From positions 6,696,001 to 6,760,000 of the forward strand of contig NW_026262604.1 in NCBI RefSeq assembly GCF_021869535.1: 64,000 bases of DNA, read 5' to 3'. Made by a program: the position numbers and the translations under genes. Positions within the stretch are counted from its first letter, which is position 1. Every line of letters begins with the position of its first letter. The stretch is from Mytilus californianus (taxonomy: Eukaryota). Below are positions 17,046 to 62,655 of the stretch, piece after piece. Below the pieces are notes generated by a model. It did no database searches, was not told the DNA's origin, and saw only the letters and a list, made by a program, of their open reading frames with translations.

Positions 17046-17238
17046 TTGTCGTTTTGTCTTTTGGTTCTCATTGGAATTCCGACAGTCTGTTGAAAAACAC
17101 GTCCTCCAAACGTAACAAACATAAGCTATTTGGTCGAAATTTTTTACCTAAATTTACGTATTATTCAAAGGTCAAGACGACAACAAAATTAGATTTTTGA
17201 GAATTAAGATGCAATGGGCTACGTAATATTCATTTCGC

Positions 17239-36620: not shown

Positions 36621-37553
36621 TTATTTTATATCTATATTCTAGAATGAAAGATTAAAGGTAAAAACGTAGACCAAGGGTGTAATTATCTGAAAATGAAGCA
36701 TTTAATCTCAAATAAGGATAAAATAAAATCACAAAAAAACTGAACTCCGAGGAAAATTCAAAAAGGAAAGTCCCTAATCAAATGGCAAAATCAAAAGCTC
36801 AAACACATCAAACGAATGGATAACAACTGTCATATTCCTGACTTGGTACAGGCATTTTCGTATGTGAAAAATGGTGGATTAAACCTCAAATCAAATTCCA
36901 TTATATTGACAACGATGTATGAACAAAACAAACAGACACAATAGGTAAAAATGTCACAAATAGGGGTACAACAGCAGCACGAACCCCACCAAACTGTGGG
37001 TAATCAACCGCATTGCTCTTAAATTCTAGGGCACCAAACATTCATCCCTTTTGTTGGACAACCATACCGTGGAATTTGATTGAAAACAAACAATTTTTTT
37101 CAATTACTTACAGACACAGCATTTTGTTTGAAACTCAGTTTTCTCTCAACTTCTCAATTAATTTCTGAAACTTTTTTTTTCTCAAAAAAAAATCAGAATG
37201 AAATATTTTATGATATAAACATGACCTTCCTCTCAACCAACCAACAACACAAAAAAAAATGAATGGTCGGGTTCCAAAGTTCAGCTTAAGATACCTCATT
37301 CAGTAGACAAAATGCAATTCTAGACACGCGATAAAAGTTTTTGATAGCATCATACCAAACAAATTATATAAACGGTCGATTTCCTATCAAGATTGAAAAA
37401 TGTTGAAATATAGTAAAACAGTTTACACATAGATTAGTAAATTCAATTAAACAGTTTTTGATATAATGATTACTACGGATCATACCATTTGCTATATTCT
37501 ACGCCCATTCTTATAAATACCAAGTACTAGTATTATTTCATTGGTAAATCTAA

Positions 37554-37868
37554 TCAATAGAAAAGAGCCAAATTATTATTCTGACAATTTATCACCGTGT
37601 CATTCAGATAAAAATGAGACAATAGACAGCGACTTTTAGCCGGTTTGTAGCCTACAGAAACGCAGAATGTGGTTTGCATACAGTATACAAAACAATCAAT
37701 CATTGCAGTTACAATAATATCATGTGCACTGAAATCCCGCAAAATCTTACATCTAGAAATATGACCGTCAAAGAGTTTTTCCTTTATGTTACAATGTATA
37801 ATCATTGCTGTAAAGATCAAAACAATTCCAAGTATGCGATTTATTTTTGAATTACATGCTTGTTCCAT
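37554..37868 (-). CDS. Secreted single PAN/apple-domain protein, 6-Cys type A (copy A1), 104 aa
   Basis: Hydrophobic N-terminus ILGIVLIFTAMII; C-x3-C-x5-C-x-S-x2-Y-x6-C-x-L PAN core plus two flanking Cys; an intact paralog exists at 55703-56017. Confidence 0.8.
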   Translation of the reverse strand: MEQACNSKINRILGIVLIFTAMIIHCNIKEKLFDGHISRCKILRDFSAHDIIVTAMIDCFVYCMQTTFCVSVGYKPAKSRCLLSHFYLNDTVINCQNNNLALFY

Positions 37869-37919
37869 GGCAGCGTATTTGTATCTAACTGATGATTTCT
37901 ACAATTTCATGCGAATTAA

Positions 37920-38194
37920 GGTGGTACCAAACACCTTGTCTAAAATTAATTTGGCTCGTTTAATTTTCATAAAATGTTGACAAAATATTTTCTTTGACAC
38001 TTTGACAAAAAATATAAAATTTCAAAAAACTTGAACAACACACTTTATCGGAAAAATTTCATTGGACATATAACAGTTTGACAAACACTAATGTTGATCA
38101 TTGAGAAGCTTTAATATTTCCTTAACAATAGAAAGTGATTAAAATGTTCAGCTGATTTTTACAGAGTTATCTCCCTTTAGTGTTATATACCACC
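37920..38194. mobile_element. Non-autonomous DNA transposon with TTAA target duplication (Kolobok-like)
   Basis: ttaa|ggtggta ... taccacc|ttaa; the paralogous site upstream of A2 (~56066) is empty, with a single ttaa. Confidence 0.75.
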
Positions 38195-38894
38195 TTAAGA
38201 CAGCTTTCCTATTTACACACAAATCTCGAAGCATGAGACTAAGAAGCTCTTTATCTTTCCTGAATAAATACTAAATAGATAGTTTTCCAAAATTTTTATA
38301 TACGAGAAACATTTGTATATCATCTGAGCTTTGAGAAGTTTTCAGATATGGGAAAAATAGTAAATTCTGTAAATAATACGTCGCATGGTCACCATTTTTA
38401 AATTCTATGCTAATTCAGGGCAACATCAAACAAAAAAATCCTCAAATAATTAATTGCAGATCGGCATTACGTTGCGTTAAATCATGAAATGGTTTATGAA
38501 GTGCTGTTAGTGAAATCCTTTCAAGATACAATTACAAATTTGCATTTTAAAAAAGATTTCATTAAGTCCGTTTTGCAGAATAGTATCTAGTGTTGAAAAC
38601 AAATTAAACATGTAAGAAAGATTGCATCTAGGAATCCAATTTACTTAAGAATAGATATTCTACTTGGTCTTTAATATACTGTAAAATGTAATGATTTATT
38701 AAAAAAATGTAGAAAAAACAACTTTATTTATTTTATGCGTCCTAAGCGTTGTATCTGTTCCCTGTCTTACATTTTATATTTGAGAAATAAAACTATAGTT
38801 AATTTCATCACTCGCTAACGTTCGGGATGCAACCCATGTGAAAATATCAAACAAATCTATAAGTTGTATGTATTATTTCTAAATAAGTCTTTCA

Positions 38895-39054
38895 GGAGAT
38901 TACTGTATTGCATTTTAAGCTTGGCCTTCATAAAACGTAGATACTGTCGCAAATTGTGTTTACTTAACGATGCGAAGCGGAGCTATGTAGACGGATATTT
39001 GCGACAGTAAAATCTTTACGAAGGCCAAGCTTAAAATACAATACAGTTATCTCC
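38895..39054. repeat. Long palindrome / foldback element
   Basis: ggagattactgtattg...aagcttggccttc...tactgtcgcaaat mirrored by atttgcgacagta...gaaggccaagctt...caatacagttatctcc. Confidence 0.8.
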
Positions 39055-39814
39055 GTTCGTATGCCACATATTGAAATAAATTCCATTTGAATAAATATTT
39101 TGGCTTAAAAATGCCATAAATGAAAAAGTCCGCTAAACTGTTACATCGTCTAAGGTATCTTAACAATGTTACGTCATAAGTATACTCTCGATGTCAAACA
39201 TAAACATTAGTCTAAGACGTATTTATACTTTTCGTACGCTTCTGAATGGTTTAAATATTGACTTGAAGAATTTGAGGCACAACATGTGTCTTTTTGTATA
39301 TTTTTTGAGAAATTACATACCAAAAAATATTTGGAATTCAAAACGGTGGTTTTTTCTCAGTCACCAATAGGGATGGAGAATGTTATCCTATCCTATTATA
39401 TTTTTTGTTGTTGTCATAAGTAATCAATACTTGAAAAATAGATGAATTCGTTTATCTTTGAAATATAAAAATAAGATTAAGACTATTTCTTTAGATTATA
39501 ATTACTAGTATGTTTTTTTTGTCAGATTAAAAATATTTTCCAGCACTCCCCTTTCACGTTTTTTAATTTTTTTGTCATATGAAAAATATTAGCAATCACT
39601 ACCCTTTCACCCAATTTACAATATAAACTCATCCATAATCTGTATGGGAACTCATCTGTTAAGCTATTTAAAAAGTAATAAAAATCTATATAGACAAAAG
39701 TATGGCTAGTCCACCAAAAAAAGAAAACGAACCCCAAGTTTTAAAATAGAGTTTTCTGGAAGTAATGAAAAGAAGGCCGAGATTCTTGAAAAAATACTGG
39801 ACATTAGGAATATA

Positions 39815-40560
39815 TTGACTCAAAGGTTAAACAAACCTACAGGACATTTGCAAGTTTTAGAAACTTTATTCGAGATGTGGTGTAGTCAGGAAGTAGGAAA
39901 TGCATCTGATGAACAATTAATACATGTACCAGATCCTTTACTAAGTACCTACGTTAAAGCTAGGAAAAAAGATGTTAACCAAAAAATATTCCGTTGTGCT
40001 GAGGACTCACTTAACGTTACAAAGAAGAAGTGGAAAGTCATACCAGATACTGCAAAGACAACCTAAATATAGAGAAATGGACAACAAGAGGACATGTAAT
40101 TATGACAAGAATGAAATTTGAATCCTCTCACACTTTTTTGTGGTCTTCTTTGCCATACATGCAAAACAAGGGGTACTTGGTGAATAACAGAGTCCAACAT
40201 GGTCTGATCTGTAGTGGAATGTTGCCATCACATTATAAAAAGTTTGTAGATGGTGCAGGAATTGGGAAAATTAATAAGAAAAAACTAAATAAGTTCTTCA
40301 ACTCATATGACAACCACATCCAAACAGAATACCACAAGTATACAACAACAGCCTTGCTTGAAGATTCAGTCTCGTATGATGATGACAAATTTGAAGAAAT
40401 AGATATAGTCTAACTGACGCAATGCATGACTGGCGTAAAAACGCTAAAGATGCAAGTATTGTTGCGATTGGTGAGAAAACCCACAAAGTTTTATCTTGTC
40501 AACAAGTTACAAAAGCTGACGATGTTGTGTCTCAAAGACATGAACGTATCAGTACCGTTA
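39815..40560 (+). pseudogene. Decayed DDE-transposase-like ORF within a ~2-kb insertion
   Basis: Frameshifted ORFs 39815-40066 and 40030-40413 continue past a stop as EIDIV*TDAMHDWRKNAKDASIVAIGEKTHKVL...VSQRHE; the region is absent from the paralogous A2-B2 interval. Confidence 0.55.
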
Positions 40561-41080
40561 GCGTTAGCATATTTGGTCCTTTCAACTAAGTGACAAAGTG
40601 AAACCTGTCTCAACTCATGTTCATTGGGCAATCAGAAGTTGTAACAATGATCCAGAGAAAGTAAGGCAAAAACAGGCATTTGTTGTGTGATACTTCTTCT
40701 AGATGTAGAAATGATAAAAAATATGAACCATCAAGGATAGTTTTGAATAATCCATTAGTCGAAATTTGTTACTTGGAGTACTTTTAAATTCCAACTTTTT
40801 TAAGTATCCTCAGGATTGTGTTTTAGGAAAAGACACATTTTATGTTGAAAGTTTCAACAACGTTATAAACATATATCAGGATAAGCGTATTACGTTTGGT
40901 GACAAACAGTACAATTCACGTTCAAAATTGACAGTTTATCAATGGAATGACTCCTGAATTCATATGTTTCTACGACTCTATCATTGAAATTCTTCTGATT
41001 GTTAACTTTCTATTTTATCAAATATAACGTATAAAAAGATACAATTTTAGAATGGTTTATACCTCTCCAAAGTTTGAATC

Positions 41081-41377
41081 TCAGTGAAATAGAATCCAAT
41101 TATTCCTCTGACGTAATTTTACATCCGGGTCATTAGGATGTAACGTCGAAAGTTGGCAGAGCTTCCTGTTGGGTTTGTAATTAACAGAAACACATAATGA
41201 TGTTTTCATACAGTTGATAAAACAATCATTCATATAGGATACAAATATATCATGTGTTGTCATATTACGCTGAATTCTATAACCAGAAATTCCGCTGAAT
41301 ATTTTCTCTTTCATTTCACAACGTGACATCATTATAATAATTCCGAATATTAGTAATGTTCCCAACATGAATTTCAT
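41081..41377 (-). CDS. Secreted single PAN/apple-domain protein, 4-Cys type B (copy B1), 98 aa
   Basis: Signal peptide MKFMLGTLLIFGIIIMMSRC; PAN core DCFINCMKTSLCVSVNYKPNRKLCQL; NMT sequon. Confidence 0.8.
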   Translation of the reverse strand: MKFMLGTLLIFGIIIMMSRCEMKEKIFSGISGYRIQRNMTTHDIFVSYMNDCFINCMKTSLCVSVNYKPNRKLCQLSTLHPNDPDVKLRQRNNWILFH

Positions 41378-44074
41378 GTTTGTTGTTAGATTCTTAATAC
41401 TGCATTTTTAACATGTTTAATAAGCACTGAATATCCGTTCACTTGTATTTTTAAGGATGTATATACAATTATTTTAAGAGAACTTAACTCTGATGAAAAT
41501 CACTGGTACATTTGTTCCAACCATTTTTCATAAATCAATTTATATTTGAACCTTTTACCCTCAGTATTCGTTTCGCCTAAATTTAAAGGTTTGATAATTC
41601 TTTCAGATTAATAAAGCGCCTCTGTTGCACTAATCCTTGCCAGTTAAAAAAATCATTTTTTGTGAAAATATGTTGATTAGAATTCAATAGCACAACCTTC
41701 ATGCCATCCATGTAAAACATCTTATTACAACATATTTTCCTTTAGAATCAATTCAACTTCATTTCAATCTTCTATTTTCTTAATTAGTATTTACGGAATC
41801 AGTTCAGTGATCAAACTGCGGTATTGTAAGAATTTACACTAATAAACAATGTAGCGTTGTTTTTCTTTTTATGCTTTTTCAAAACAATACAAAGCTACGT
41901 GCCGGGAAAAATCCCGTCAAGTGTAAACTAGTTAGTAGTTAGTAGTTAATGCATGTATAATAAACGCATCCTTTAAGCGTAAAAACATTGGGTGAGTTCA
42001 ATTTTTCTTATATAACTTATCAGTCCGTATAAATTTGACATGCAAAATAATCACCTCCTGCCATACACTCATTCTCCAATGTATAATTGCCACTTCCCTA
42101 CATAGACCCTGTAATAAGAAATCCATTTTTTAGTTGTCTCCTTTAAGAGGAATATAAATTTTTATTGACAATGGAGGGCAAATGGAAAGAAATAATTTAT
42201 CTGTGAGTAATATGTGTAACCTTTAATGTTTTCAAATCTTTCAATAACATTAAATTTTTTGATAATCTGAAAACTTCTGATACCAGTAGTTATTTTCCTT
42301 AAATATTGGTTAAAACGCCAATACATGTATTTCACTTTCGAGTTATTATGCAATGCGTGGGCTGAAGCCATTTTTGTCCGGTATAGAACAAATCTTCGAT
42401 TGATGTTAAGATTGTGTAATAACAGAACCAAATCAGTAATCTGATGAAGACTCTGATGGATAGTTGTTTCCTTGGCAAGCATAACATGTCCATTCATTCT
42501 CTCATATTTAGACTTGGTAAAATGATTTCTTTCATTTATAATTCCATATGTCGACATATAAACATCTTCAGCTATGTATTCATTTTTTAATGTGTGGTCA
42601 GATATAAAATGTATTACTTATCCTGATTCACCCCATATGTCGACTGTGTAAATATCGCCTGCTTAAGCATGTATAGGGGAAGCGTAAGTATTTATTCTTG
42701 CATAGGCGACAATACTAACATTTTCTTAAGTTACCACTTTTTATAATAAAAACCTGGATAAACAGTTATGTGTGATATTAGTACTTTATTATTCAGTTTT
42801 GGATGGTATTTTTACCATCTTCGAACGGAGCTTGTTTATGGTATCCATGCCTACGGTCATTTTACATCAAATTTGTGTAATTTGGAAGCCTTTTCGAATA
42901 ATTATCAACAAAATATTTCGATATGTTTCAAAAATTATATTTCAAATATAAACACTGCAGTTATTCATAAATAAATACAAAAAATGTATTGTAACCTTAC
43001 ATCCAAAAACAGTGCTCCTACATTGACTTCCTTTGCCTTGGGTATACGAAAGGCCAACCTAAAGCCGAGAAAATGTAGTACTACTTTTTTCCCTATACTG
43101 TGACATAAAAAATATAAAGAATTCTTATGATACCATCAATGCAAAACTGATTTATTGTGAAACTATTTGCCATGAGAAATACTTGCCTGTCCCTATTACT
43201 TATAGAAACATGGATCATTTTATGTCCCCATCCCTACATTCTGGTTTAACTCTTTCTGTACTTCTTTCAGATAAAGCATGATAAAATACCTGTATCCAAT
43301 CCCATCTGTTCTTATTTAAAAAGAATAGTTAACAGTACTTTTAAACATATAAAAATAACTGTTCCATTCAATTTATATCCATTTAATCCAAAAAATCACA
43401 GCATAACACAAAATCAAGATTGGTCATACTTATCTCCATGCCATGCTTTAGTATATGCCATATTGTGGTCCAAAATTTCAGAGCTTGTTATGTCCATTAT
43501 TCTGTCTTGATATGATAAAGACAAAGATGTTGGACACTAAAAACATTAAATATGCAAAAAACACAGCTGTAAAATTGCATTTTTTGGCTGTATTTATCTA
43601 CAAAAAACTGAATTATGTCACATGGGAGTATTCATTACCAAAACATAAATCTTTTCATTACATGTGACTTATTCTTTTCGTATATGTAAGACTTGTGATA
43701 TCCCTCCTTAGAACACACTATACCCTTATGTGAGAGTAAAAATCGTCCTTCGTAGACATTATACGTGTATGTGAACCTTATTTCCCTTTGAACACACTTA
43801 ACATGGACGTGAGGCTTATCTCCCTTTATTCACATACCGATTATGAAAACTTAAAGAGCTTTTGGGACTGCCAATGAAATTACTTTCTCAACTCTTTAAG
43901 TTTAAGTACCCCAAAGACCAATAGACACTGATTTGAATAACTTGAGAAAAACCATACCGTACAGTAAGCTAAAGAGGTCATGTGATGATAATATTTGAAA
44001 CAATTCAAGGGTGAAAACCAATAGCATGATTTAATCTTAGAACAATAAACCTTTAAATATTGTAGCAGAAAAAA

Positions 44075-45020
44075 GTAAAATCACAAAAATACTGAACTCC
44101 AAGGAAAATTCAAAAAGGAAAGTCCCTAATCAAATGGCAAAATCAAAAGCTCAAACACATCAAACGAATGAATAACAACTGTCATATTCCTAAATTGGTA
44201 CAGGCATTTTCTTATGTAGAAAATGGTGGATTGAACCTGGTTTTATAGCTAGCTAAACCTCTCGTTCTATGACAGTCGCATACAATTCCATTATATTGAC
44301 AACGATGCGTGAACAAAACAAACAGACACAATAGGTAAAAATGTCAAAAATAGGGATACAGCAGTCAATATTGTGTTATCATGTTAATTACAATAAAACA
44401 AACAAATGTAACAAAGAAGCACAAAAAGGCATACATCAAATTTAAAATCCTCAGTTTGCATTTTTTATTATACGATTTTATTTATCTATGTAAAATCCAT
44501 CCATAAAGGATGGAAGGTTTTAAGTACTGGCGTAGAATCGCGCGTTTGACGTCACACAGGTAGATATAAAATAATTTTGTCGTTCAAAGTATGACGGGAT
44601 ACATATAAGTACAGAGTCACGTCAAATGGATATCACAAAAAACAGACTTAACAGTAAAAGTAATATTAATAAAATAAAATAATTTTGTCGTTCAAAGTAT
44701 GACGAGATACATAAGTACAGAGTCACGTCGAATGGATATCACAAAAAACAGACTTAACAGTAAAAGTAATATTAATAAAGACAAATAAAAGAATACTATA
44801 ACACGTTATCAAGATGATAAACAACGTCAGTACGCAGAATCTATACTTCAAGACCATCGTGTATTATTTGTGAAGTTGATACGGAATATTTATCAACAAG
44901 GTCTTAATTGGTACCTTCCGATGAACTTTTTTAGAAAAATGACGAAACGTTCTTTGACATACCCCTGGTTCATCAACTTTCTGCTCAGACACTGGTGACG
45001 TTTTACAAAGTCTGAGTAGA
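44075..45020. mobile_element. Retroelement-derived repeat (aaaatcacaaaaatactgaactcc family) with internal ~110-bp tandem duplication
   Basis: Same head at ~8030, 30535, 34560, 36720 and (inverted) 54480-54590; duplicated block at 44568-44665 and 44677-44778; Penelope-like coding remnant on the minus strand at 44900-45020. Confidence 0.65.
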
Positions 45021-45419
45021 AGCTGCAAGCTCTTGAATACCGAATAAGTTGGGAAATAGGCAGCAATCATCGATAATCACCTGATTACAGGCTCTTTACT
45101 TGTGAAGTTTAAGGCTCGGGCTAAACATGTCTCTAACTTAACCTAGAATAGTGGTATAACAGCATGAAGAGTATAACAACAGAATAAACTGTAGAAATCA
45201 GTTAAAAATTTGCAGGATTCATCGATACTAAACAAAAAACAATTAATAAACAATAGAAAGAACTGACCTAAGAGAAATCAGTTTCCGAATTTAGTTAAAA
45301 GTCCAATTTCAACTTGTTAAAACAAATAAAAAAAAAAAACAACGCACCTCCATGTTCTTCAATGAAACAAACTTCTATCTAATACCAACCGAAAATTTCA
45401 GACAACGTTACACAAGGTC

Positions 45420-47260
45420 CTTGAATGAAAAAACAATGTATCTATCACATGACTAGTTGTATTAGATTCGAGGCTCACTTCCGTCCGCGTGCCATTGAAC
45501 GGATAAATGAAATATGACATAACTTCTGTGAAATCAAGGAAATCTTTAAACTGTAGATCCCATGAAATATGACAACAACAACACATATTAAGTGCAAGTC
45601 TTTGTAAGAACCAGGCAATTAAAAAAAAAAAATCAAAACATGGCCGAAAACAAACCACCGACCTAACCATCCTATTTTGAAGCTACCTTCATCCGGAGTT
45701 AGAAATGGCAGGTCTTTTATTTCTGCGGGTCTGGTAATTCGAGAAATCTCTAGATAACTTTTGGCAAATTGCGGAGTTAGCTCCCCTTAATTGTTAATTT
45801 CTAGGGCATTTCAAACAAATCATATCTTGAATTACCAGAACAGGAAAAGGAAACAAATGTTATATTCGTGCACCATTATACATTTTGAACATAAATTAAT
45901 GTAAACTTGAGTGGGTTTTTGATTGTCATGTTTCACCACTTCCTGATTCTTAGGCAGTTTGGCACTTAACCAAGAAGTACATCTATAGGTCATCACAGTT
46001 ACGTTCTTTAACGATCGAAAACAATCATTATTGAATATTATTATATTCTTCACACGCCGTGTTTGAGAATGTTGACCCATGTTTGATATCATATTTTGTT
46101 GCTTACCGTTTAACTTTCAATTGTTAGGTAGTGGGTCTGAATAAAGGGAAGTCAAATTAATTTATTTGAGTTTCTTTCCTTCAACAGAAATGTTTTAACT
46201 TTTTATTTCCTGACGGTTAAGTATCTACATTTAGCTGTTGTAAACTGTCAAAGATTCATTTCAGCATATTTTCCTATACTTTTATTATAAAAACTGGATT
46301 TTGATTATTATATATATCAATTGTTATTTATGTTGTGTACTTATTCTGATTTTAACTTGAAACTGACTGTTTAAAGATAATATGTCAATCAGCATTTGAT
46401 TTGATTTGATAATAAATCACGTAACGAGTAGTATCTAAATGTATTTTGTAAAATTTGATAATACTCGTTTTAACATTTCACAATAGAACTGAAAAACCTG
46501 CAATTGCTTAGAAAGAACTGTTTTGATTTGGGTAAACTTTCATTTAACATTTCCACTGAACTGACATAATAATTCAATTCAATTTGGTAAATTTTGTTAA
46601 ATTGTCTAGTTTTAAAAACCGGATATATCAGATACATGTATCTTTCTGCAGGCGTCCCTAACTTCCCTTACACTATATATATATATATGTTTGTAAACCC
46701 CGTGTATCACCAACGACTTTCATTGGACTGCCAGTTGCATAATATTTCAAAGCCAATTACATTCGAATTTCTTCAGGTATAGCATACGACTATACTATCT
46801 ATAATTAATTCTGGACAATTTCATGCAAGAGTCAGGTATGAATTGAAAAACATCCCAGTTTTAATACTTTCATGATTTGCATATATCAAAATTAATTGTC
46901 ATTGCTACATTACATTGTTCATTGACATAAAATGAACAAAATATAATTATTTTTTATTCAATTTTGTTTTAAGATAAAAGTTCATTCCCTATGAAACCTG
47001 ACATTTTTTTGGAAAGTTTTTACCATTCAAAGGTTAAAACATTTACTGAGAACTGTGTTTCATAGCTGCGAAACAGTGGTGACGTTTTCCTACAAACAAG
47101 TGTTTCCGAATTTGCTGTGTTACCACCGTCAGAGTTTAGTTAAAGAGCCTTACTCACTTGCCATTAGAAAACTAAGCCCAAACACATGCGTGTTTGTTCA
47201 ACTAGTGATAACATGTACATTGATCCAGGGTTTCCGCAGTTATGGTGGTATTGGGAGATG
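45420..47260 (-). pseudogene. Decayed duplicate of FN3-CUB exons (parts of FN3-2, CUB-1 and FN3-1)
   Basis: 45440-45570 matches 20280-20410 (HISWDLQFKDFLDFTEVMSYFIYPFNGT); 46185-46265 matches 21528-21620; 47140-47240 matches 22665-22770 with frameshifting deletions. Confidence 0.8.
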
Positions 47261-50200
47261 GGCCACTGTGAATAGAGAGTATAAAGGGAACTCAAACTAA
47301 ATATGACGATGTCGACTGTCATTTTTTTCTAAAGTATTTCTAAAAAAAATTCATAACTATAATTTCCGACCGTGCGAGACCCTCATGGGAACCAAGGTCG
47401 TTAAACACCCCCATAGTAGTAGTTACTATGTTTAGAACAGGCTTTGTTTACAATATTTTGTAGGTTATAAATGCAGGTGTACCGTCGCTCATGCATAACA
47501 GGTCCTTAGTCTGCTTTAAAAAGAAACAATCAAAAGCAGAACACCCTTTGAATACAATAAATTTTGTTAAATATACAGTTGTACCAGCGCTCATGCATTA
47601 CAAAAACTGTGTTGGGAAAGGGTTGGACGCCCCCTTAAATGTCCAACCCGACCACAATCTGTATGTGCCTGTACCAAGTCGGGAACCTGTAACTCACTGG
47701 TTGGTCGATTGTTGCTCTATAGCATATTTGCTTTTTCGTTTATTGTTTTGTACACAAATCAGGCCGTTAGTTTTCTTGTTTGATATTCCTTACATTTGTC
47801 ATTTCGGGGCCTTTTGTAGCTTGCTGTGCTGTTAGGCCGTACTTTTACTTACCATAGCTGACCTCAACGTCATTTGGTGGTCTCTGATGGAGATTTGTCA
47901 AATTATACCACAACTTATTATTTTCATATCAGTTTGTGATAACTATTAACATGTGGATATACCTTTTAAAAAAGACAAGTTTACTGGTTATCGAATAATA
48001 TCAAAAAGTGTCTCTTAGCGGAATGGACTTTGTGTAAAGATGATAGCTCTAGAAACTTATATTATTTCTCACTACGGCTAGAACAAAATTTTTTAAAATT
48101 TAGAACACTAACATACAAGTGATCAAGTTTTAACATGTGAGCAAGTCAGTTTATCTTAACACCATTTTAACAATTGTCAATTTGAATAACAGCAATAATA
48201 GTGCTATATTTCCTGGTAATGTAGCATCTAGTACATCAAAATCCATTCATCCGTTATAAATCTCTTGGCATTTGACTTTATTCATTCTCTGAACTTCCGA
48301 AAGAGTGGCTGTTGTCGACCTCCAACTACATTTGCAAATCAGTCATTTCTTTACTACAGAAATGTTCAATTTATATCCACGAGAGACAAAGGCCGCGTTC
48401 ACACTGCGAATGCGAAACATATCTGTTGTATACTCAAGTTTTATTGTTGACATCTTTGAAAAAAAAATAATAACATTTTGAAATTGTTTTACGTCCATTC
48501 AATTCTATATTCATATGTCAATTAACATCATCAACTATTTGCAAAATAAACGCATTGATACTTCATTATCAATGTTCAAACGCTCAATTAAACCTGTTTT
48601 AAACTTGTTTAGGCCTCAGTGTAAATACCTCCTAAAAGAGGGACGAAAGATACTAGAGGGACAGTCAAACTCATAGATCGAAAACAAACTGACAACGCCA
48701 TGGCCAAAAATAAAAGACAAAAAGACAAATAATAGTACAGATGACACAACATAGAAAACTAAATTCTAAGCAACACGAACCCCACCAAAAACTGGGGGTT
48801 ATCTCAGGTGCTCCGGAAGGGTAAGCAGATCCTGCTCCACATGTGGCACCAGTCGTGTTGCTTATGTTATTACAAATCCGGTAAATAGCCTAAATTGAGA
48901 ATCAAACGTTAGGACAACACAGTTCAGTATTTACTTTGTGATTAAGTTTAATAAATAATGCTTCAATATCTATGATGAGTTTGCTTTTCAAGTTATATTG
49001 CTAATATAACGGAACTATAACCATCTATCATACAATTGGGACGTTTAGCAAGTTATATAACCAGGTTTTACCAACCATTTTTTTGTTGTAATGCTTGTAA
49101 ATGTCACGGACGCAATCACGAGTTGATTGACCGTTATGGAATATCCGTTTCAAAGAAGATAAAGGATATGTTCTAAATGTATATAAATTGGATATAATTC
49201 CTCTTATGTTTATGTATTTTAAACTCTGAGCGTTCTTAAATAAAGTTGAATTCATTGATGCGCAACAAAATTGGTATTTTTTTTCACCTTTTTCTAAGCT
49301 CGCATACTTATTTATATTTATCTTTATTTCATAAGCCACAGAACATGTAGAATGGAAGAGCATACACAGTATTGTCTATCAAATGGATGTATGAAACCTG
49401 GACCCGGAATACATAAAGTCACTTCCAGATTATGAGTAAAAGTATTAAATTTTGAAGAATCGATGAATCGTATGGGACAAACGAGCAGTACATCATTAAT
49501 GGCTGTCATTTCAACTGAATTCTTTCCGGAATAAAACCTTTATGCTTTACTTAACGGAAATACTTCAACAGTATTATGTGTTAATTTTAAATAAAACGTA
49601 TAGGTTTCCTTATAAAATTTCAGAAAATAATCATAAATTTTGATAGCACAAAAATATCTTAGTTGACTTGTTCTAAAAATCACTGATCTAATAGTTTTAT
49701 AAACTTTTTTTTAAGGCTCCTAAATAGCACAGACATTAATGAATGTATACGATGTTAACAAACGTAAAACTGATTAAAAAAGTATAACAAAAGTACCAAA
49801 CTCCAAGGTAAATTCAAAATGGGGAGTCCGTAAAACTGACAAAATCAAACACTATCAATCAACAGAACGAGTTAAAAACATGTCATATTCCTGACTTGGT
49901 ACAGGCATTTTCGGAAGAAAATGACGGGTTGTTTAGCCTGGTTTTATTGCTGCTAAACCTCACACTTGTATGACAGTTGTTTATAGTTCCGTTTTATTGA
50001 ATAAATTGGGTGAAATAATAGGTAAATGTGACTAGAATGGGGATCTAGCAGCCAACATTGTACATCACAGCTGCCTAAAAAATTCTGAAAAACATACAAA
50101 TTAATCTAATCAAGATTCTTCTTTATTGCATCAGCTGAAATTATACACATTATATATCAACGATCTCAGTGACTTGTTATCATAGTTAACCATGTCGTCA

Positions 50201-52048: not shown

Positions 52049-52709
52049 AAGGGGACGAAGTCTGTATGAATTATTTTTTTTTAATTCAAACATATTTCAA
52101 CTTCAAAATCTGTTCAAAAAAGAAACGGAAATACCCTTACGTTTCCGATTTCGGTTCTGTTGTTCGGAATTTTAGTTGTGACGTTATTTATGTTATGACG
52201 TCATATTCAATGTAAACAAAGAAACGCTATCAGGGTTGCGTTCAATATCGTAGCGGCTACATAGGGCTACGTAGATTTATGACTATTGAACGTGTAGCTA
52301 GCCTAGCTGCTACATAGATATCAATAGCAGCTAGGCTAGCTACTCGTTCAGTAGACAAAAATCTACGTAGCACTACGTAGCCGCTACGATATTGAACGCA
52401 ACCCAGGTAACGTTTTTTCATATCAAGCCATTCAAGGAATTATTGAAAATGGAATTGGTATTGCGTTCCTTCCTATATTTTACTAGACTGATAAATATAT
52501 ATATTACTCAAAGACTCATGCAAACGAGACCGGAAAAAGGAAGTAGATTTCTGCGCAAATGCGGGAAAATAAAAAAGTCTGAAAATTAAAAAGTTAACGA
52601 TTTTGAGTTCATTAGTAGAACGAAAATTTCGGGAAATTTTCCCGATTTTTTTTTTTTTTTTTTTTTTTTTTATTGATTTTTCTACCGTAATAGGGGACTT
52701 CGTCCCCTT
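52049..52709. mobile_element. Insertion with aaggggacgaagtc/gacttcgtcccctt inverted ends and a nested ~172-bp palindrome (52233-52404)
   Basis: Absent at the paralogous site (~33425); terminal hairpin aggggac-ttc-gtcccct; poly-T tract at ~52646-52671. Confidence 0.7.
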
Positions 52710-53049
52710 ATAATCCAATTTTCAAAATGGCGGTTGCCCTAGATTGCAGACTGGTAAACTGTGAATAATATTTGTTGCAAACAAAACAGTCGTTTAAAAC
52801 AATTTCCATTAGAACAACTAATCACTGTATATACTTTCTATGCATTCGATAACTTGCTTTGAGTTTTCATTGTTGATGTAGTATTTCACTGCTGAGTAAA
52901 TATATGTCGTCTAAATGTTTGTTTGGTTAAGCATTTTACCGAGAGATAATCGGGAAAAGTATTTATGAGATTTGTTTGCTCGTGATAGTATATGTTGGTT
53001 GATCTAAACCCCGATCTGTATTCTCAAATATACCGGATAAGCTTAATTC

Positions 53050-55090
53050 ACTGTTGCACGAGACCCATAACACTTCCGTTATTGGTTCAAATCCAGCTAA
53101 GTTCAGATGGGTTGCAATTATTTTGCACAGTGCTAGCCATAGGCTATTCAAAACCGTGACAACTTATCCAAAGATGGGGAAAACGTACCATTTAAATGTA
53201 TTATATGCTAATAAGGGTTTGGATGCTATTAATATTAGAACATCTTTTTTCACAACAAATCTGTGCAGAAAACGACTTGAAAATAAAACTACACTAAACT
53301 TATTGTATCTAAAATTTTCAATCACAAAAAAGGTATTAGAGATCGTTACCCCCAAGGATGAAAAACCCTAGTCTTTCATTCTTTTTCATTGTTTCCATAC
53401 ATATATAGTCATCTGGTCATGTTATTACTGGAAACTTTGGCAGCGATAACAATGAACAAGTAAGAGAATTAACAGCAAAGACCCGAAATATTGAATTCCC
53501 CAATCTATCAACTGGAACAAGAACTTCAGTTACTAATGATGCAGTTGGGGACTATCCCAAAAAATTACCAAGGCACGAGCCATATGAACTAAACCTGAAC
53601 ACTTGTGTTATACGTTCAAAAGCGTATTCCAATTCTACGACGTACAATGAGACAACGGGTTTATATTCCTTTCAAGAAGTCAGAGGTTGTTGATGCTTTA
53701 TCTCTTAATTTTCTTTACGACAAATAAGTTTTTTTTCTAGCAGACAAAGCCTCTAAAAATATTGTTATTTGGATGTATAACTTAAGAACTCGGAATTCAT
53801 TGCAAAACTGGGATTTCAATGTAAAGCCTGACACTATTCACGAAAGAGGAGATTTTTCAAATCATAAACAATCCTTCTCTCATTTGGTATTAACATAGAA
53901 TCTTCAACCTCAATACTGGATAGCTAATTACACAAACATCTTTATAAAGAACTATCTATAGAAGAGTCGTCAAGATGTTGCAATCATTCTTTTTGCAGTA
54001 AAAGATTGCTCTAAGAAATATTGCGATGAGGTATATTCAACAAGCGGTGTCAATCAGAAGTGGATTCTTAAAATTCTAAAGATCTACTGAAAATCTTTTA
54101 TCCAATTCTAAACAACTTTGAAGTAATATTAAAAGCGTATAATTTTTCTATGCTTAAGGTTACTATTCCCCATGCACAATTAAAAGATGAAAAACATATC
54201 ATCTCATTGAAATAAGAGTTTTCTACACATGGAAATCGTATTAAATAATTTCTTGTTAAAGGTCATAAACAATCTTTGCGAAGGATCGCACGGATTGAAA
54301 AACCCAACCTATACACCGAAGATGATATCATCAAAATGTCGAACGTTTTGATCGGCAACATGTTTGTTGAGTTAAATGGATTAATATTTCAACAGACAGT
54401 CGACGGTATTACAATAGTTAATAATTGTGCAATCGACTGACATATTTGTTTTTATACTCATATGAAGCAGGTTTCAGGAATATGACAGTTGTTATCTATT
54501 CGTTTGATGTGTTTGAGCTTTCGGTTTTGCCATTTGATTAGGGACTTTCCGTTTTGATTTTCCTCGGAGTTCGGTATTTTTGTGATTTTACTTTTTTCAT
54601 ACAAAACATTCTTCGAAAATCAGCATCTAGCAAAGATTCAGATAAATTGATGATGTCCTATTACTCAATAAGATACATTTCAGTGGGTGCTTGCATCTTA
54701 TATATCCAAATGAACTTGAAATTAAGGATACAACTGCTACAAGAAGGTCTACAGCATATCTTGACCAGTGATATTGACACAAATCGACGATTTCCAACTA
54801 GAATATATTACAAACGGCATGATATAACTTTCTATTTGTCAACTTCTCATTTCTTATCAATAGCATACCCTCCTTTTGATCTATTAGTGTTTACACATTT
54901 AACGTTACGCCCCTGTATGTTCATGCTATATGGAGCTTTATTAGCAACAGTTTGCTCCTTACACAAAACCTGTTCCAAAAGAGTTATGAGGGAAAAAAAA
55001 AGACAATGCATAAGTTTTAAAGTCGCCTCATGACCAATATGCTATACCAGTTTCTCAATTCACTAGCGATATATTTTCGTAGTCTTATTT
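53050..55090 (+). pseudogene. Longer decayed Penelope-like retroelement ORF
   Basis: Fragments YANKGLDAINI, GHVITGN...EQVREL, the RT core region and RIYYKRHDITFYLS are collinear with the PLE-type polyprotein as recalled. Confidence 0.7.
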
Positions 55091-55702
55091 TATATCTATA
55101 TTTATATATAATTTCTTAGTAAGGACAATCCATCGCATTGCTAATTGAATTTTATATTAAGGGCACTCAACATTCATCTTTTGTGTGGACAAACAAAATT
55201 CTGGACTTTGATCGAAAACAAACAATTCTTTTCAATAACTTACAGACACAAGATTTTTTTAACTCAGTTTTTTCCCAAATTCTCACTTACCTTCTGAAAC
55301 TATTTTTTTCAATTAAATTCAGAATGAGATATATTATGATTTAGACATTACACCCCTCCACCTCACCAAACCAATAACGCAAAAAAAAAAAAAACAACAC
55401 ATGAATGGTCGGGGCCAAAGTAAAGTTAAGCTTAAGATGCCTCATTCAGTAGACAAAATGCATTACTAGGCACGCTATAAAAGTTTTTGTTAACATAATA
55501 CCAAAACAGTAAAATAGTAGGTTCTCATCCTGATTGCAAAATGTTGAAACATAGTTAACAGTTAACACATAAATCAGTAAATAAAACATTTTTTGAGATA
55601 ATGATTAATACGTATCATACCAGTTGTTATATTCCACGTTCATTCTTATGAAAAAGAGTACCAAATACTAAGTAATAGTATTCATTTTATTAATAAATTT
55701 AA

Positions 55703-56017
55703 TCAATAGAAAAGATCCCAATTATTATTCTGACAATTTATCACCGTGTCATTCGGATAAAAATGAGACAACCGACAGCGACTTTTAGCCGGTTTGTAGC
55801 CTACAGAAACACAGGATGTCGTCTGCATACATAATACAAAACAATCCACCATTGCAGTAACAATAATATCATGTGCACTGAAATCCTGCAAAATCTTACA
55901 TCTAGAAATATGACCGTCAAAGAGTTTTTCTTTTATGTTACCATGTATAGTCATTGCTGTAAAAATCAAAACAATTCCAAGTATGCGATTTATTTTTGAA
56001 TAATATGCTTGTTCCAT
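55703..56017 (-). CDS. Secreted single PAN/apple-domain protein, 6-Cys type A (copy A2), 104 aa
   Basis: Intact ORF with the same length as A1; 12 aa and about 21 nt differences (hand count); all six domain Cys are kept. Confidence 0.8.
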   Translation of the reverse strand: MEQAYYSKINRILGIVLIFTAMTIHGNIKEKLFDGHISRCKILQDFSAHDIIVTAMVDCFVLCMQTTSCVSVGYKPAKSRCRLSHFYPNDTVINCQNNNWDLFY

Positions 56018-57154
56018 GGCAATATCTTTGTATCACACTGATGATTTCTGCAATTTCATGCGAATTAAGACAGCTTTCATATTTACACATACATCTCGAA
56101 AAATGAAACTTAGCTCTTGATCTTTCCCGAATAAATACTAAATATAGAGTTTTTCAATACGAGAAACATTAGTATTCCATCTGAGCGTTGAAAAGTTTTC
56201 AGATATGAGAAAAATAGTAACTTCTGTAAATAATACGCCGCATTTTCACCATTCTTTAATTCTAATGTGTTTTTTTTAACATAATAATAAATTTGATACC
56301 ATCAGCAAATATTAGACTAAGTGATCATTGTTGGTTAACATGGCAAATATTTCATGCAAATTCAGGACAACATCAAACAAATAGTCCTCAAATTAATTAA
56401 ATGCAGATCGGCATTACGTTGCATTAAATTACGAAATTTTAATTGAAGTCCATTATCAGGAAATTCTTTGAAGATATAATTACACATTTGCATTTTTAGA
56501 TGATTTCATTAAGACTGTTCTGGCAATTAATATCTATTGTTGTAACTAAATAAGTGTCGTCAATATTTTAGAAAGGTTTCATCTAGAGATCTAATTTACT
56601 AAAGAATAAATGTTCTTCTTGGTCGTTGGTGTGAATGCTAAATATAATCGTTTTTCAATTTATGAGTTCTATTAAAGCTTTGTATCTTTTACCCTTTTTA
56701 GGATTTCAAATCTAAAAAAAAAAAATGGAGTTAATTTTATCCCTCTATAACATTTGGGATAGAGCTCGAATATAACGGCACAGCCCATGTAAAAATTTCA
56801 AACAAATGCATAAATTATCTCTAAATGAGCCATTCAGTTATATAATGTCAAGAGTCTAAAAATTGCTATGCAAAATTAATTATCCGAGGCTCTGACCTTA
56901 TGTCTTCTATCTTTCTTTAAGAAGATATTGACCAAACAGCTTGTGTTGGAGGAGCTGGATATCGTTGTAAAGTACTTGATTCGTGGTTATACGAGACTCC
57001 CCGAGAATCGTTTCGGGTTTAAAATACACAATTAATACTTTCTCACTACTCTTCCACTGAAACTGCGTATAATGGCTAACTTTTGTTTTATTCAAATATA
57101 ACATATAGAAAGGTAGAATATTAAAATAGTGTATGCCTCTCTAATGTTTGAATC

Positions 57155-57451
57155 TTAGTAAAAACTAATCCAGTTAATCCTCTGACGTAATTTTACATCC
57201 GGGTCATTAGGATGGAACGTCGAAAGTTGACAGCGCTTCCTGTTTGGTTTGTAGTTAACAGAAACACAAGAGGATGTTTGCATACAGTAAATGAAACAAT
57301 CATTCATATAGGATACAAATATTTTATGTGTTGTCATATTATTCCGTATTTTGTAACCAGAAATTCCGCTGAATATTTTCTCTTTCATTTCACAACTTGA
57401 CATTGGTATAGTTATCCCGAATATCAGTATCGTTCCCAACATCAACTTCAT
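57155..57451 (-). CDS. Secreted single PAN/apple-domain protein, 4-Cys type B (copy B2), 98 aa (in-frame upstream ATGs to 57478)
   Basis: Same length as B1 from MKLMLGTIL; 17 aa differences; the four core Cys are kept. Confidence 0.8.
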   Translation of the reverse strand: MKLMLGTILIFGITIPMSSCEMKEKIFSGISGYKIRNNMTTHKIFVSYMNDCFIYCMQTSSCVSVNYKPNRKRCQLSTFHPNDPDVKLRQRINWISFY

Positions 57452-60400
57452 ATTTTTAGGTTCATAATACTTCATCATTTATAAGCACTAAATATCCGTT
57501 CACTTGTACTTTTAAGGGAGTACATACACTTATACTAAGGAACTTGACTGATAAAAATCACTGATCAAGAAATATGTGCGTCAACCATTTAAAATCAATT
57601 TAAAGTTACTAATTTCAAAGTTACACAACTTGTTTAAATCATGCTTTTTATTAATACTTAAAAAGATACTGAGTAAAACAAATGTCGTCTTACCGATTCA
57701 CGGTAAACGTTGTTCATGCAATACAAAAAACATCCATTGAACACTTTAAATTGATTTGAACAATGCTATATATTTGAACCATTTACCCTTAGTATTCGTT
57801 TCGCGTATATTTGAAAGTTTAATAAATCCCGCCTGTATCAGACGCTTCTTTTACATTCATAGTTAATGTAGCGTAAATCCTTCCGAGTAAAAAACAATTT
57901 GTGTGAATATATGTTCATTGGAATTCAATAGCACGACCTTGGTGCCATCCATGTAAATACATCTTATTACAACATATTTTCATTAAGAATCAATTAAACT
58001 TCATCTTAATCTTATATTTTCTTAATTGATATTTACGGAATCAATTCAATGTTCAAACTGCAGTATTATAAGAATTTACACTAATACGCAACGTACGGTT
58101 GGTTTTCTTTTATGTTATTTAATACAATACAAAACTACTTACCCGGAAAAACACCGTCAAGTGTAAACTCAAGGGGTAGTAAATGCATGTATAATAGAAT
58201 CATCATTTCAATGAAGATACATTGGGTGAGTGGGATTATTCAAATATATAATATAAGTCATTAGTCGGTATAAATTTGATATGCAAAATAATCATCTCCT
58301 GCCATACATTCATTCATTTATTCACCCTGTAATTATAGATCCATTTTTAGTTGACTCCCTTAAAAGGGAGATAACTTTTTATTGACAATGGAGAACAAGC
58401 GGAAAGAGCAAAGTTATGTGTGCGTACTTATATTTAAAGTTTTGTTAATCTGAAAACTTACGATATCAGTAGTTATTTTTCACTAAAAATTGGTAAAAAC
58501 GCCGATAAATCACTTTCGAGTAATCATGCTTTGCGTGGACATAGGCACATTTTTCCGTTGTAAAACCAGTCTTCGATTACCAAAGAGGAAGTAATTGGTG
58601 TAAAGATTGTGTATCGGTATTTGGCAAATTGACTATTGTGCATTAAAGTTGCTTTAACCATGTCTTTTAGACTCTGTTGAATAGTTGTCTCATTGACATA
58701 TATTCATTCTTCCATATTTAGACAGATTAATATTGTCTTCTTTCTATTCATTATCCCATATGTCGACGTAGAAACATCTTCGGCTATGTATATATTCTCC
58801 AATGTGTGATCAAGGTTAACATCTTTTACTTATCCTGAATCATCCAATGTGTCGATTGGGTAAGACTCCTGCCTGCTATACATCTTTAAGGAATTGAATG
58901 GGGGATCCTTTAATTCTGTATTATTTATTTTAAGCCATTCTCTATTGTTTTATACAATTTGCTCATTATTCTCTATTCTTTACATTTTAGCACCCCATAA
59001 TACTCTACTCTCTATTTGTTTGCCTCTTTTCATATATTTACTAATCTTTTTTGTCCATTTTTTGTATAGTATTAGCATTTTATTCGCCATTCTGTAAACC
59101 CCATTCAGACCCTCGTCTATCATATAAAGGATGAATTTAATATATCACATTAAAAAACGCTATTCTTATTCATTACTGAATCGATCTAATGAGTGTAAGG
59201 AAGACCGATCTTTTTTCATATTTACTAACAAACGTGTGTGTAAGACTTGTAATATTGTTGCGCTCTGGTCATTGGCCTCATGTCAAGAACTAAAACTGGT
59301 AAAAAGTGTATTTTTCTAGTTGTGGCCTCCGTTCCACACTTCTCCATGCAGATGTCTCTGGATACACCTCGTACTGTATTTTTATTAAAGGAATGGTTTA
59401 CCTGAACTTAAATCTATTAAAAGATGCTATTTAATCGATGTATCATCTTCTTTTACATGCGCATTTTTTCAAATTTGTCTTTGTTCATCGCTACTTTCAC
59501 TTTTTGGCGCCATTTTTTATGTTGTGTATTTCTTGTGTACTACGTCGTTTGTGGGCGGAGCCAAAAGTATAAATAGCAAGTTTGCATGCACCGAGTAGGC
59601 TTTTCATCTCACATGCAGAACGTTCGCTGTTTCTAAATATTAGAAAACAATAATATTGCACCAAGCAAAATATTGTAAATGCTGTAAAATGACGCAGAAA
59701 CATATTAGTTTTGGACAGAAATTGGTAAATGTCTATTCCGAGACTTTATTAAAAAATTTTGATTCATTAATCGAAGGCTACTATAAAACTCCGTCGTCTG
59801 CCGTTTTGCACCAATCTGCGTTGTCGGTGTTTCTTTTTTGGCTAGCACCAATCATATTTGCTCGGTGCTACACCAAGTGAAATTAATTTGTGAAAAAGTA
59901 TTTTTATTCAAGAGAAAGCACCTAAATATTTACTTATTAGTCTTATATTTACCCTTATGAAATTATGAGGTCAACTATATATATAACCTGGACCAAGCAG
60001 GGTCCCAAATTATTTGCTGTGCACCAACTAGATTTGTTTGCACCGAGTGCTAACATGAACTACTTCTAAGCCTTTAGGGACAAATGCATCTATATTTATT
60101 ATAATATATATCTCTTTTCATGTGTATTATGAACCACTGTTTTTGTTGTATTGCATATTACTGAAGCAGAAAATAATACAATTTTTGAACTTCCATTATG
60201 ATTTTTATTTTTACTTCCTTCACCAGAGGCCCACATAAGTGACATGGGTATCCTGACTCGAAAACCCCGGAACGTTATAATATCTCCCTTGATACATTCT
60301 ATACACTCTTTTACCTAATGTAAGGGTTAATGTCATTCACCGTACGCATTATATGTGTATGTGAGCGTTATGTCCGTTAAAGCGCACACAACATGAACGT

Positions 60401-62356
60401 ACGACTTATCTCCTCTTGTACACAAACCAAGTATGAAATACTCATCTCTATTCTTACATAAGAGAATTGAGTCAAGTGTTATATCCCTTCATATTCATTA
60501 TACTACATGTAAAATTTATATCACTTTGCGTATATCTAAATACGCCGTTGTACATGCAACTCTGTATGTAAGAGTTGTATCTTTTTTCGGTACTAGTAAT
60601 ATATCATATAGTAAATCATAAACATTCCAAACAATAATGCATTACAAAATCTGCAATGATGTATACGAAGGCAGGTAAGTCCTAAATATACTAATTCTTA
60701 ATGGTTACTAATTTAACACTGTAATTAGATCTTTGAATATTGTTTTTTTCTTGTATACATATTGCATGTATTGATTATGTTTTCAGTCAATTAAAACCAT
60801 ACTTAATAGTATTGTTATAGACCTATGCACTTTCACGGTACTACAATTTGTCGATACTTATATTTCGGCATTGCACAAGGTCATATTTTTCTCTGACTCT
60901 TAATGACGTTTTTACACTAAATCCATTTGATGTTTGATATGTACTGACTGATATATTAGTCTTATATACATGATTTTTATTATTAGTTGTTATTGGCTAT
61001 GACTAGCTGTCAGTAACTGCGAGTACTCTCGGATCTGTACTTTGTGTCTTTTTTGTTGTTTGGGATGTATAAATACCCGTCCACGTCTGGTCTGTGTTTT
61101 TGTTAGATGTTTCTTTTTCATCGATCTGATGAGTTAAGCCTTTTTCAACTGATTTTTATAGTATGTTCTTATGTTGTGCTTTCAAAGGTTAGAGGATGGT
61201 TTGAGCGCTAACAAACATGTTTAACTCCGCCACATTTTTTATGTGCCTGTACCAAGTAAGGAGCCTGTAGTTCAGTGGTTGTCGTTGGTTCATGTCTGTC
61301 ATACTTGTTTTTCGTAAATTGTTTTGTTATAAATTATGCTGTTAGTTTTCTCAATTTTATAGCCGACTATACGATATGGGTTTTCCCAATTCTTGAAGAC
61401 CTTTCAATGGCCTATTGTTGCTTACATCCACCTCACTTGGGTGGATAGTTATCATATTGGTAATCATACCACATCTCCTTATTTTTATATAAGTTAATTA
61501 AAGGTGAACACCAAGAAAGACAAGTTTCATATACGCGTAAACACAGAACGAAGAGGCATATGGCTGACATATACACACCAAGTTAATGAGTCAGGAATTT
61601 CGTTAACATACATTACTAAAAAAATGTTTACAATTTAAAGTTTGACGTTTTCTTACTTGACATTACTCCCCCATTTTACTAAGATATTGTTTATAAAACT
61701 CGTAATTAAGATATAATTGTCATAAAGTTATAAGTCTTTTGAATAGACTTCTTTTCAAATCTAATCAACGCAAACCTGTAGTATGATCTCTGAATATTGC
61801 ATTTTTTGGTACCAACATTAATTTTATTTACCAAAGTAAATACACAACTAACATATATTTCCAACACCTTAAATCCTGCATCCTGTCGATACAAATATTG
61901 TCAATGCACTAGATCATGATGTTCGTAGACGGTTCATTACAACGTTACGCTAAATCCATTGGAGGTGTACTGATTGATGTTTTTTTTTCTTCTGCAAATA
62001 CTAAATCTTATTTCAAGTGGGCACATTGTGATGCATTATAAAATTGAGAATGGAAATGGGGAATGTGTCAAAGAGACAACAACCCGACCATAGAACAGAC
62101 AACAGCAGAAGGTTGGATATACAACATAAATCCAAATCAGATGACGAGATGGACATTCATGAATTATTCTCTTTTTCCAAATAATTCCTTAGATAATCAA
62201 AACAACAAAAAAAACATGAAAAGTAAGGATAACAAAATACACTGTGGATACTTCTTACAGTCACACTGATTTATTGGATCTATAGTAGACAGAGAAGAGA
62301 CTTTATCAAGCACGGCACACATTCAAGATTCTATAAACATCACTCCATACGAAATT

Positions 62357-62655
62357 TTAGTAGTAAATAGTCCATTTGTGTTTCTGATTTAATATGAATC
62401 CCGGGTCATAAGAATGGAACGTTGATCATTCACAGCGATTATTGAAAGGTTGGTAATTAACAGAAACACATGATGTTGTCTGCATACAATAAACTAAACA
62501 ATCCTCTATCATAGATACATCTGGTTCATTTATTGTTAAAACGCCCGAATTTTAAAATCAGAATCAAAACTTTTGAATATTTTCTCTTTTGTTTCACAAC
62601 AAGCCATCATGAGGATAGTCCAAAAAATCATTATAGTTCCGAATATCAAGTTCAT
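62357..62655 (-). pseudogene. Fifth PAN/apple mini-protein gene (4-Cys type, copy C), disrupted
   Basis: MNLIFGTIMIFWTILMMACCETKEKIFKSFDSDFKIR, then a 1-nt frameshift (~62545), then GVLTINEPDVSMIEDCLVYCMQTTSCVSVNYQPFNNRCE*STFHSYDPGFILNQKHKWTIYY*; TGA at 62426-62428. Confidence 0.8.

Follow-up and report, generated by a model that had tools for sequence, protein, structure and literature searches.

Proteins of known structure that resemble the products described here come from several different settings. The leech antiplatelet protein (LAPP) of Haementeria officinalis (1i8n) is a small secreted lophotrochozoan PAN protein with a solved chain of 89 residues; this salivary protein of a blood-feeding animal binds collagens I, III and IV (PMC7191736). 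SML-2 of Sarcocystis muris (2yil) and MIC4 of Toxoplasma (4a5v, 2ll4) have two to six PAN domains per protein and contain galactose-binding PAN modules (PMC6608980, PMC13672358). In MIC4 residue K469 binds the sugar, and a K469M mutant loses binding (PMC6608980). The PAp domain of plasminogen (4a5t) and the N domain of hepatocyte growth factor (HGF; 3hms) are N-terminal modules of large vertebrate kringle and protease proteins. Here we describe a cluster of short PAN genes in a 64-kb stretch of Mytilus californianus DNA (contig NW_026262604.1; below, the window, with positions counted from its first letter). The cluster consists of four intact open reading frames (ORFs), A1, B1, A2 and B2, and one broken copy, C. 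We consider it likely that the four ORFs are functional genes and C a pseudogene, all belonging to a lineage-restricted family in which each gene encodes one small secreted single-PAN protein.

The ORF listing of the window, tblastn searches with the four ORFs and a six-frame scan with a family hidden Markov model (HMM) together give four intact minus-strand ORFs and the pseudogene, at the positions given in Table 1. This is the arrangement that the original prediction had proposed. The tblastn searches and the HMM scan find exactly five family copies, all of them co-oriented. The family HMM recovers the intact copies at E values of 1e-38 to 1e-43 (A1 at 1.7e-38), and in the six-frame scan nothing else in the 64 kb falls below E 0.29. 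Candidates for a sixth copy at 27533-28086 and 32219-32341 (tblastn E 0.065-0.7) were rejected as chance matches, as the family HMM has no match there and the sites lie within a repeat that is present at at least four places. Each intact ORF holds a start codon, a hydrophobic N-terminus, the domain and a stop codon in one open frame. At the protein level B1 and B2 are 83% identical, while the A and B types share 45-48% identity. In the ORF listing B2 is counted from an upstream in-frame ATG at 57478 (57155-57478, 107 aa). One public variant, from sequencing run X1, has a stop codon inside the nine-codon N-terminal extension that this start implies, and we therefore consider that B2 most likely begins at its tenth codon, the ATG at 57451, giving 98 aa like B1. 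The upstream ATG would then probably belong to the 5' untranslated region (UTR). Copy C is split by the family HMM into three pieces in two frames (62539-62676, 62429-62551 and 62360-62425), with a stop after codon 39, then a frame change, and a second in-frame stop after the last core cysteine.

The assignment of these ORFs to the PAN domain, for which a Pfam search had been suggested as a check, was upheld when that search was run. Three of the four ORFs exceed the gathering score of 21.4 bits for PAN_1 (PF00024), namely B2 (30.6 bits, E 3.1e-7), B1 (26.9 bits, E 4.5e-6) and A2 (25.4 bits, E 1.3e-5). The fourth, A1, lies marginally below the cut-off (19.3 bits, E 1e-3) and is 88% identical to A2. 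Structure prediction followed by fold searches also returned PAN/apple domains for both A2 and B2, in agreement with the predicted fold. The AlphaFold2 model of A2, built from 14 aligned sequences, has a mean predicted local distance difference test score (pLDDT) of 77.7, and the 50 best Foldseek matches to it in the PDB consist solely of PAN/apple domains and the PAN-like MANEC domain. They include the HGF N domain, plasminogen, SML-2, factor XI, prekallikrein, an Eimeria PAN domain and LAPP. The model of B2, built from 23 sequences, has block mean pLDDT values of 84-94, near 90, across the domain, and was searched against 48,161 chains independently of Foldseek. The best structural matches are plasminogen PAp (Z score 12.6, root-mean-square deviation 1.5 Å over 72 residues) and the HGF N domain (Z 12.4), with deviations of 1.5-2.0 Å over 72-74 residues for the two and sequence identities of 12-15%. 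SML-2 (Z 9.7), TgMIC4-A5 (Z 9.3) and LAPP (Z 8.3 over 76 aligned residues) are also matched, and the first match clearly outside PAN, WSC or kringle-type modules reaches a Z score of only 4.6. In a fold search of the ESM Atlas nearly all matches were PAN_1-rich clusters. The models have one helix and four to five strands, in line with the PAN/apple fold, in which a single alpha-helix packs against a curved antiparallel beta-sheet, and the four core cysteines (C-x3-C ... C ... C), invariant in both the 14- and the 23-sequence alignment, are predicted to form two disulfides. The ORFs end 2-4 residues past the last strand, and Pfam finds no further domain in them.

In sequence, the described PAN proteins are more distant. 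Among PDB sequences SML-2 (E 2-3.5e-4) and MIC4 (E 2-7e-3) are the only solved proteins reached by the sequence profile, and this match covers only the helix and the core-cysteine motif (~35-39 residues), so that it is silent on sugar binding. Within it the motif aligns in SML-2 and in MIC4 domains A1-A2, and K469 lies outside it, in domain A5. LAPP, at 12-14% identity, has no sequence-profile match. The nearest relatives outside the family by profile are giant multi-PAN repeat proteins (P0002, with 5928 aa and 35 PAN matches, and P0005), single repeats of which are 28-37% identical to B2 over 57-81 aligned residues. An exhaustive profile search returned 29 representatives, including several proteins of 95-158 aa in addition to the giant multi-PAN proteins, and a word-index profile search returned 54 proteins, nearly all of 95-172 aa, with PAN_1 precomputed in 35 of them. 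These 54 are all unnamed proteins from Logan, ENA or JGI assemblies. A word-index homologue search with B2 alone gave no matches, and the literature searched contained no named mussel or bivalve PAN mini-protein family.

Small single-PAN proteins are frequent. In the ESM Atlas, invertebrate proteins of the same architecture and size, labelled only as PAN domain-containing protein, form clusters of 108-116 aa that have 99, 61 and 501 members and occur most often in Rotifera and Cnidaria; a 142-aa cluster is commonest in Nemertea. These proteins and the unnamed single-PAN proteins from our searches (P0015-P0098), none of which has been studied, differ from the window proteins in sharing only 17-36% identity with them. 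Relative to these other small PAN proteins, the A, B and C subfamilies form a clade of their own, with counterparts only in closely related contigs. The suggestion in the original prediction that the cluster is an undescribed system was not borne out, since single-PAN proteins of ~100-170 aa are numerous in invertebrates and LAPP is a studied example. On present evidence this is an ordinary, fast-evolving gene family and not a new kind of system.

Each product had been proposed to consist of a signal peptide and one PAN domain encoded in a single coding exon, as a stand-alone protein. This agrees with our analysis, in which every ORF has its own start and stop and no additional domain, with the signal peptide being predicted. 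Signal peptides were called from N-terminal hydrophobicity and the -3/-1 rule; the hydrophobic core has a Kyte-Doolittle mean of 2.3-2.9 over 12 residues, and the proteins would be secreted by way of a cleaved signal peptide. After the predicted cleavage the mature proteins have 78 residues and a mass of 9.0-9.35 kDa, with isoelectric points (pI) of 7.8-8.3 in the A type and 9.3-9.5 in the B type, and one sequon each. The types differ in their cysteines. The B and C types are limited to the four core cysteines. Two core disulfides only are likewise found in the plasminogen PAp and HGF N domains, which the B type resembles in this respect. The A type adds C40 and C95, both retained in all four A-type sequences, and these may form a third disulfide. 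Whereas the giant multi-PAN proteins consist of tandem canonical six-Cys domains, alignment with the repeats of P0002 shows the mini-proteins to be without the canonical C1-C6 pair, which in six-Cys apple domains of the factor XI and prekallikrein type joins the two extreme ends of the domain by a third disulfide. The canonical first Cys aligns to a position where the signal peptide ends and the residue varies, with Cys in A1, B1 and B2, Gly in A2 and in the A2 counterparts described below, and Phe in the C-type counterpart P0004. The canonical last Cys would fall just beyond the stop codon, only P0004 having a terminal Cys. As judged from this alignment, C40 and C95 are a relocated pair and not the standard apple C1-C6. 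If a B-type protein is cleaved before Cys20, it would have an unpaired cysteine.

Counterparts of the cluster were found on short Logan contigs (L001-L005), probably from a related species. We considered whether these contigs might be transcripts and rejected this; they are colinear with intergenic DNA of the window and hence genomic, and hold no information on UTRs or splicing. They contain two A-type ORFs of 104 aa each (P0001/P0030 and P0051) and, in the same contigs, a B-like ORF (P0003) and an intact 99-aa C-type ORF (P0004/P0031). In a maximum-likelihood tree the A sequences and the C sequences each form a clade that includes both window and counterpart sequences, and the B sequences are not resolved. 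Downstream of the intact counterpart C-type gene lie one or two incomplete copies of its 3' half (L003 854-1108 and L004 786-881; 79% identical to window 62316-62492), which points to local tandem fragment duplication.

Comparison of coding and flanking DNA by global alignment argues for selection on the ORFs. Between A2 and A1 the coding identity is 93.3% with 0 indels in 315 nt, against a flank identity of 82.2% with 18 gap openings in 1046 nt. The corresponding values for B2 and B1 are 86.9% with 0 indels in 297 nt, against 77.7% with 6 gap openings in 269 nt, and for A2 and contig L001 86.0% with 0 indels in 315 nt, against 74.2% with 14 gap openings in 752 nt. At the rate seen in the flanks, ~5-7 indels would be expected per coding stretch, and none is observed. 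For the paralogues A1 and A2 the ratio of non-synonymous to synonymous substitution rates (dN/dS) is 0.43, and for B1 and B2 it is 0.27. The four A-type sequences share their start, their stop and a length of 104 aa, as well as the six cysteines and the N-x-T sequon, at ~14-17% nucleotide divergence. We read these patterns in the sequence as those of real, constrained genes for all four intact ORFs.

For evidence of expression, public reads were mapped onto 54200-59800. One run, X7, is recorded as RNA under the same species label; ~6% of it was used (10.3 million reads), and its reads are confined to two repeats, at 54474-54600 and 58958-59113. Runs X1, X2 and X3 have a different organism label, and that they are RNA is a guess only. 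Contigs from these runs lie over A2 and B2 (Table 1). The 312-nt contig, which is unspliced, starts 13 nt upstream of the A2 ATG and stops 16 nt short of the lower end of the ORF, and the read mapping on this interval reported no splice joints at the ORFs. X2 and X3 leave the unique intergenic DNA without coverage, which fits transcripts; coverage in X1 is scattered, and X1 may include DNA. Expression would be at best low. A distant relative, P0035, is an ORF within 3-kb contigs of unspecified nature and is uninformative on transcripts. The two repeats themselves have high depth in both directions, with many loose ends, in the RNA run as well as in the contig runs, and suggest an abundant interspersed element that is transcribed. 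Further copies related to them lie at 30529-30651, 34560-34683, ~36720-36886 and ~44070-44254.

Several observations weigh against four functional genes with secreted products. There are zero X7 reads on A2 or B2 in the 10.3 million sampled, and the contigs over the ORFs, at a depth of 2.5-6.7, come from the runs that are only guessed to be RNA. A1 and B1 lack a canonical AATAAA polyadenylation hexamer, the equivalent positions reading AATGAA in A1 and GATAAA in B1. Against the counterparts dN/dS is 0.65-0.86, and the variants in public runs mostly change amino acids (9 of 12 and 5 of 8 nucleotide differences). A public collection of ~15 billion proteins contains none of the four proteins. As to secretion, the leader was judged from hydrophobicity and the -3/-1 rule, and in B-type proteins the predicted cleavage site, near Cys20, is ambiguous.

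One explanation of much of this list is that the PAN ORFs have recently been silenced or are dying, that the signal of constraint lingers for lack of time, and that the ORFs are heading for the fate of C, which is already dead. It would account for the silence of A2 and B2 in the only true RNA run sampled, the loss of the hexamer in A1 and B1, the elevated dN/dS against the counterpart contigs and the missing public proteins. Set against it are the lack of any indel in three coding comparisons, as compared with 6-18 in the flanks, the cysteines, sequon, start and stop of the A type that persist at considerable divergence, the paralogue dN/dS, and the low-depth contigs that in two runs lie over the ORFs and not over the unique DNA between them. 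We therefore regard dying genes as unlikely and favour functional ones. Since the start, stop, cysteines and sequon are kept, yet dN/dS against the counterparts is high and variants mostly alter amino acids, constraint on the surface would be weak, with a conserved scaffold and a surface that evolves fast. Such rapid amino-acid change fits a role in recognition or defence and not one in housekeeping.

If the four genes are functional, each would be translated from a start and a stop within one exon, in three subfamilies, A, B and C, all of which have a counterpart in the contigs that probably derive from a related species. The product would have a cleaved signal peptide followed by a disulfide-stabilised PAN domain of ~78 residues and ~9 kDa, neutral to basic and with one N-glycosylation sequon. 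By analogy with other PAN modules, which bind collagen in the case of LAPP and galactose in the case of SML-2 and TgMIC4, it would most likely work outside the cell as a free module that binds a glycan or a protein. The same molecules could instead bind matrix or collagen in the manner of LAPP, for example in the byssus, in the shell matrix or in the plugging of wounds, and have no part in binding glycans or microbes. LAPP is, like them, a small secreted PAN protein and matches both models (template modelling score 0.58 by target with A2, in addition to the B2 match above), its affinity for collagens is documented (PMC7191736), and PAN_1 is among the domains of lophotrochozoan biomineral proteomes (PMC13425148). 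On the other hand, LAPP is absent from the HMM matches in PDB sequences, where only the galactose lectins SML-2 and MIC4 match, and structural matrix binders less typically show such fast, lineage-specific evolution. We give a matrix-binding mode a low probability.

Equally tentative is a more specific scenario, in which the family is an invention of the mussel lineage. Its members would derive from a PAN repeat cut down to a free protein of 9 kDa, with the canonical outer disulfide lost and, in the A type, a relocated replacement pair gained, and would be fast-evolving, polymorphic secreted recognition factors of immunity or of gametes. The A-B pair would have stayed adjacent and been co-duplicated because its members cooperate, for instance in a heterodimer that may involve the variable extra Cys at the signal-peptide junction. 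We put this forward as a speculation of low probability.

The original prediction had also read the cluster as a small duplicating family with both intact and dead copies. This history stood, although the rarity expected of an undescribed system did not, given how numerous small single-PAN proteins are. In self-BLASTN comparisons the A-B pair is found in two blocks (Table 1), which belong to a larger duplicated unit in which ~20277-42651 matches ~45436-58863. The A-B pair has thus been copied within a segmental duplication of ~13-22 kb. The unit includes the 5' part of a neighbouring FN3-CUB gene, one exon of which (15432-15914) matches Pfam CUB (E 2.9e-10). Positions 20277-22781 of this part are 69-91% identical to 45436-47252, a decayed partial FN3-CUB copy on the minus strand, and the ORF at 45398-45670 is the remnant of an FN3-like exon. 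In the second unit FN3-CUB is thus present only as fragments, with both PAN ORFs still open. A ~2.3-kb insertion between A1 and B1 (38672-40957) is absent from block 2; it has plus-strand ORFs at 39815-40413 with only a weak match to a Mutator-like transposase (E 0.052). Copy C is dead in this genome and intact in the counterpart contigs, which from sequence comparison is a case of duplication with differential loss.

Taken as a whole, the data make the PAN genes stand-alone, as indicated by the stop right after the PAN domain, which is conserved in paralogues and counterparts, by the candidate AATAAA hexamers near the A2 and B2 stops, by the unspliced 312-nt contig and by the candidate start of the FN3-CUB gene itself, which lies downstream in the same orientation and has a candidate first exon at 22834-22986 with an ATG and a hydrophobic leader at 22986. 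That the ORFs are alternative first exons, with a donor before the stop, and are spliced to downstream FN3-CUB exons into a PAN-FN3-CUB protein would suit the position of the five copies, upstream of and co-oriented with that gene, and the duplication of the B-A pair along with its 5' part, but is very improbable in view of these four features, of the mapped reads, for which no joint at the ORFs was reported, and of the frequency of small single-PAN proteins as an architecture in their own right.

Table 1. Positions in the window of the PAN genes, their flanking features and the contigs assembled from public runs.
Feature	Position	Strand	Description
Gene A1	37554-37868	minus	104-aa precursor; predicted signal peptide ~residues 1-26, 78-aa PAN domain, 6 Cys, N-D-T sequon
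Gene B1	41081-41377	minus	98-aa precursor; predicted signal peptide ~residues 1-20, 78-aa PAN domain, 4 core Cys, N-M-T sequon
Gene A2	55703-56017	minus	104-aa precursor; mature part ~9.0 kDa, pI 7.8, 6 Cys
Gene B2	57155-57451	minus	98-aa precursor from ATG at 57451; mature part ~9.35 kDa, pI 9.5, 4 core Cys
Pseudogene C	62360-62655	minus	ATG and leader intact; stops and frame shift downstream
AATAAA polyadenylation hexamer (A2)	55686-55691	minus	begins 12 nt past A2 stop; candidate by sequence
AATAAA polyadenylation hexamer (B2)	57087-57092	minus	begins 63 nt past B2 stop; candidate by sequence
X2 contig	55719-56030		312 nt; over A2, colinear, unspliced
X3 contig	55717-55934		222 nt (218 aligned); over A2, colinear, unspliced
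X1 contig	57209-57463		268 nt (255 aligned); over B2
X3 contig	57284-57434		151 nt; over B2
X1 contig	57424-57616		193 nt; over B2
Duplication block 1	36002-42651		holds A1 and B1; self-BLASTN
Duplication block 2	54183-58863		holds A2 and B2; self-BLASTN, 70-89% identity to block 1
FN3-CUB gene	13979-22986	minus	multi-exon, alternating FN3-like and CUB-like exons

Other repeated sequence is present in the window. Between 26176 and 35522 there are kb-scale internal duplications of 81-93% identity (27819-29041/32077-33325, 29039-29894/33459-34347 and 30436-31483/34463-35522), copies of which recur at 49.6-53.0 kb within the large duplicated unit. A minisatellite-like ORF at 27179-27460 (minus strand) consists of ~four copies of a 16-residue repeat unit, LLLPLINDVTKRYYCK. 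At 4364-6420 a tandem array has ~four 502-bp units that are 93-95% identical, two of which each contain an 82-aa ORF on the minus strand (4601-4849 and 5103-5351).

The cluster adds a publicly unannotated, conserved gene family to the mussel genome. It is also a clean small case of a segmental duplication with unequal fates, in which the PAN pair has been kept, the FN3-CUB fragment has decayed and C has been lost in one lineage. The cysteine patterns of the three types suggest that the outer disulfide of the PAN domain can be dropped or moved. If the tissue and the ligand are found, these 9-kDa domains would be easy-to-handle binding modules.

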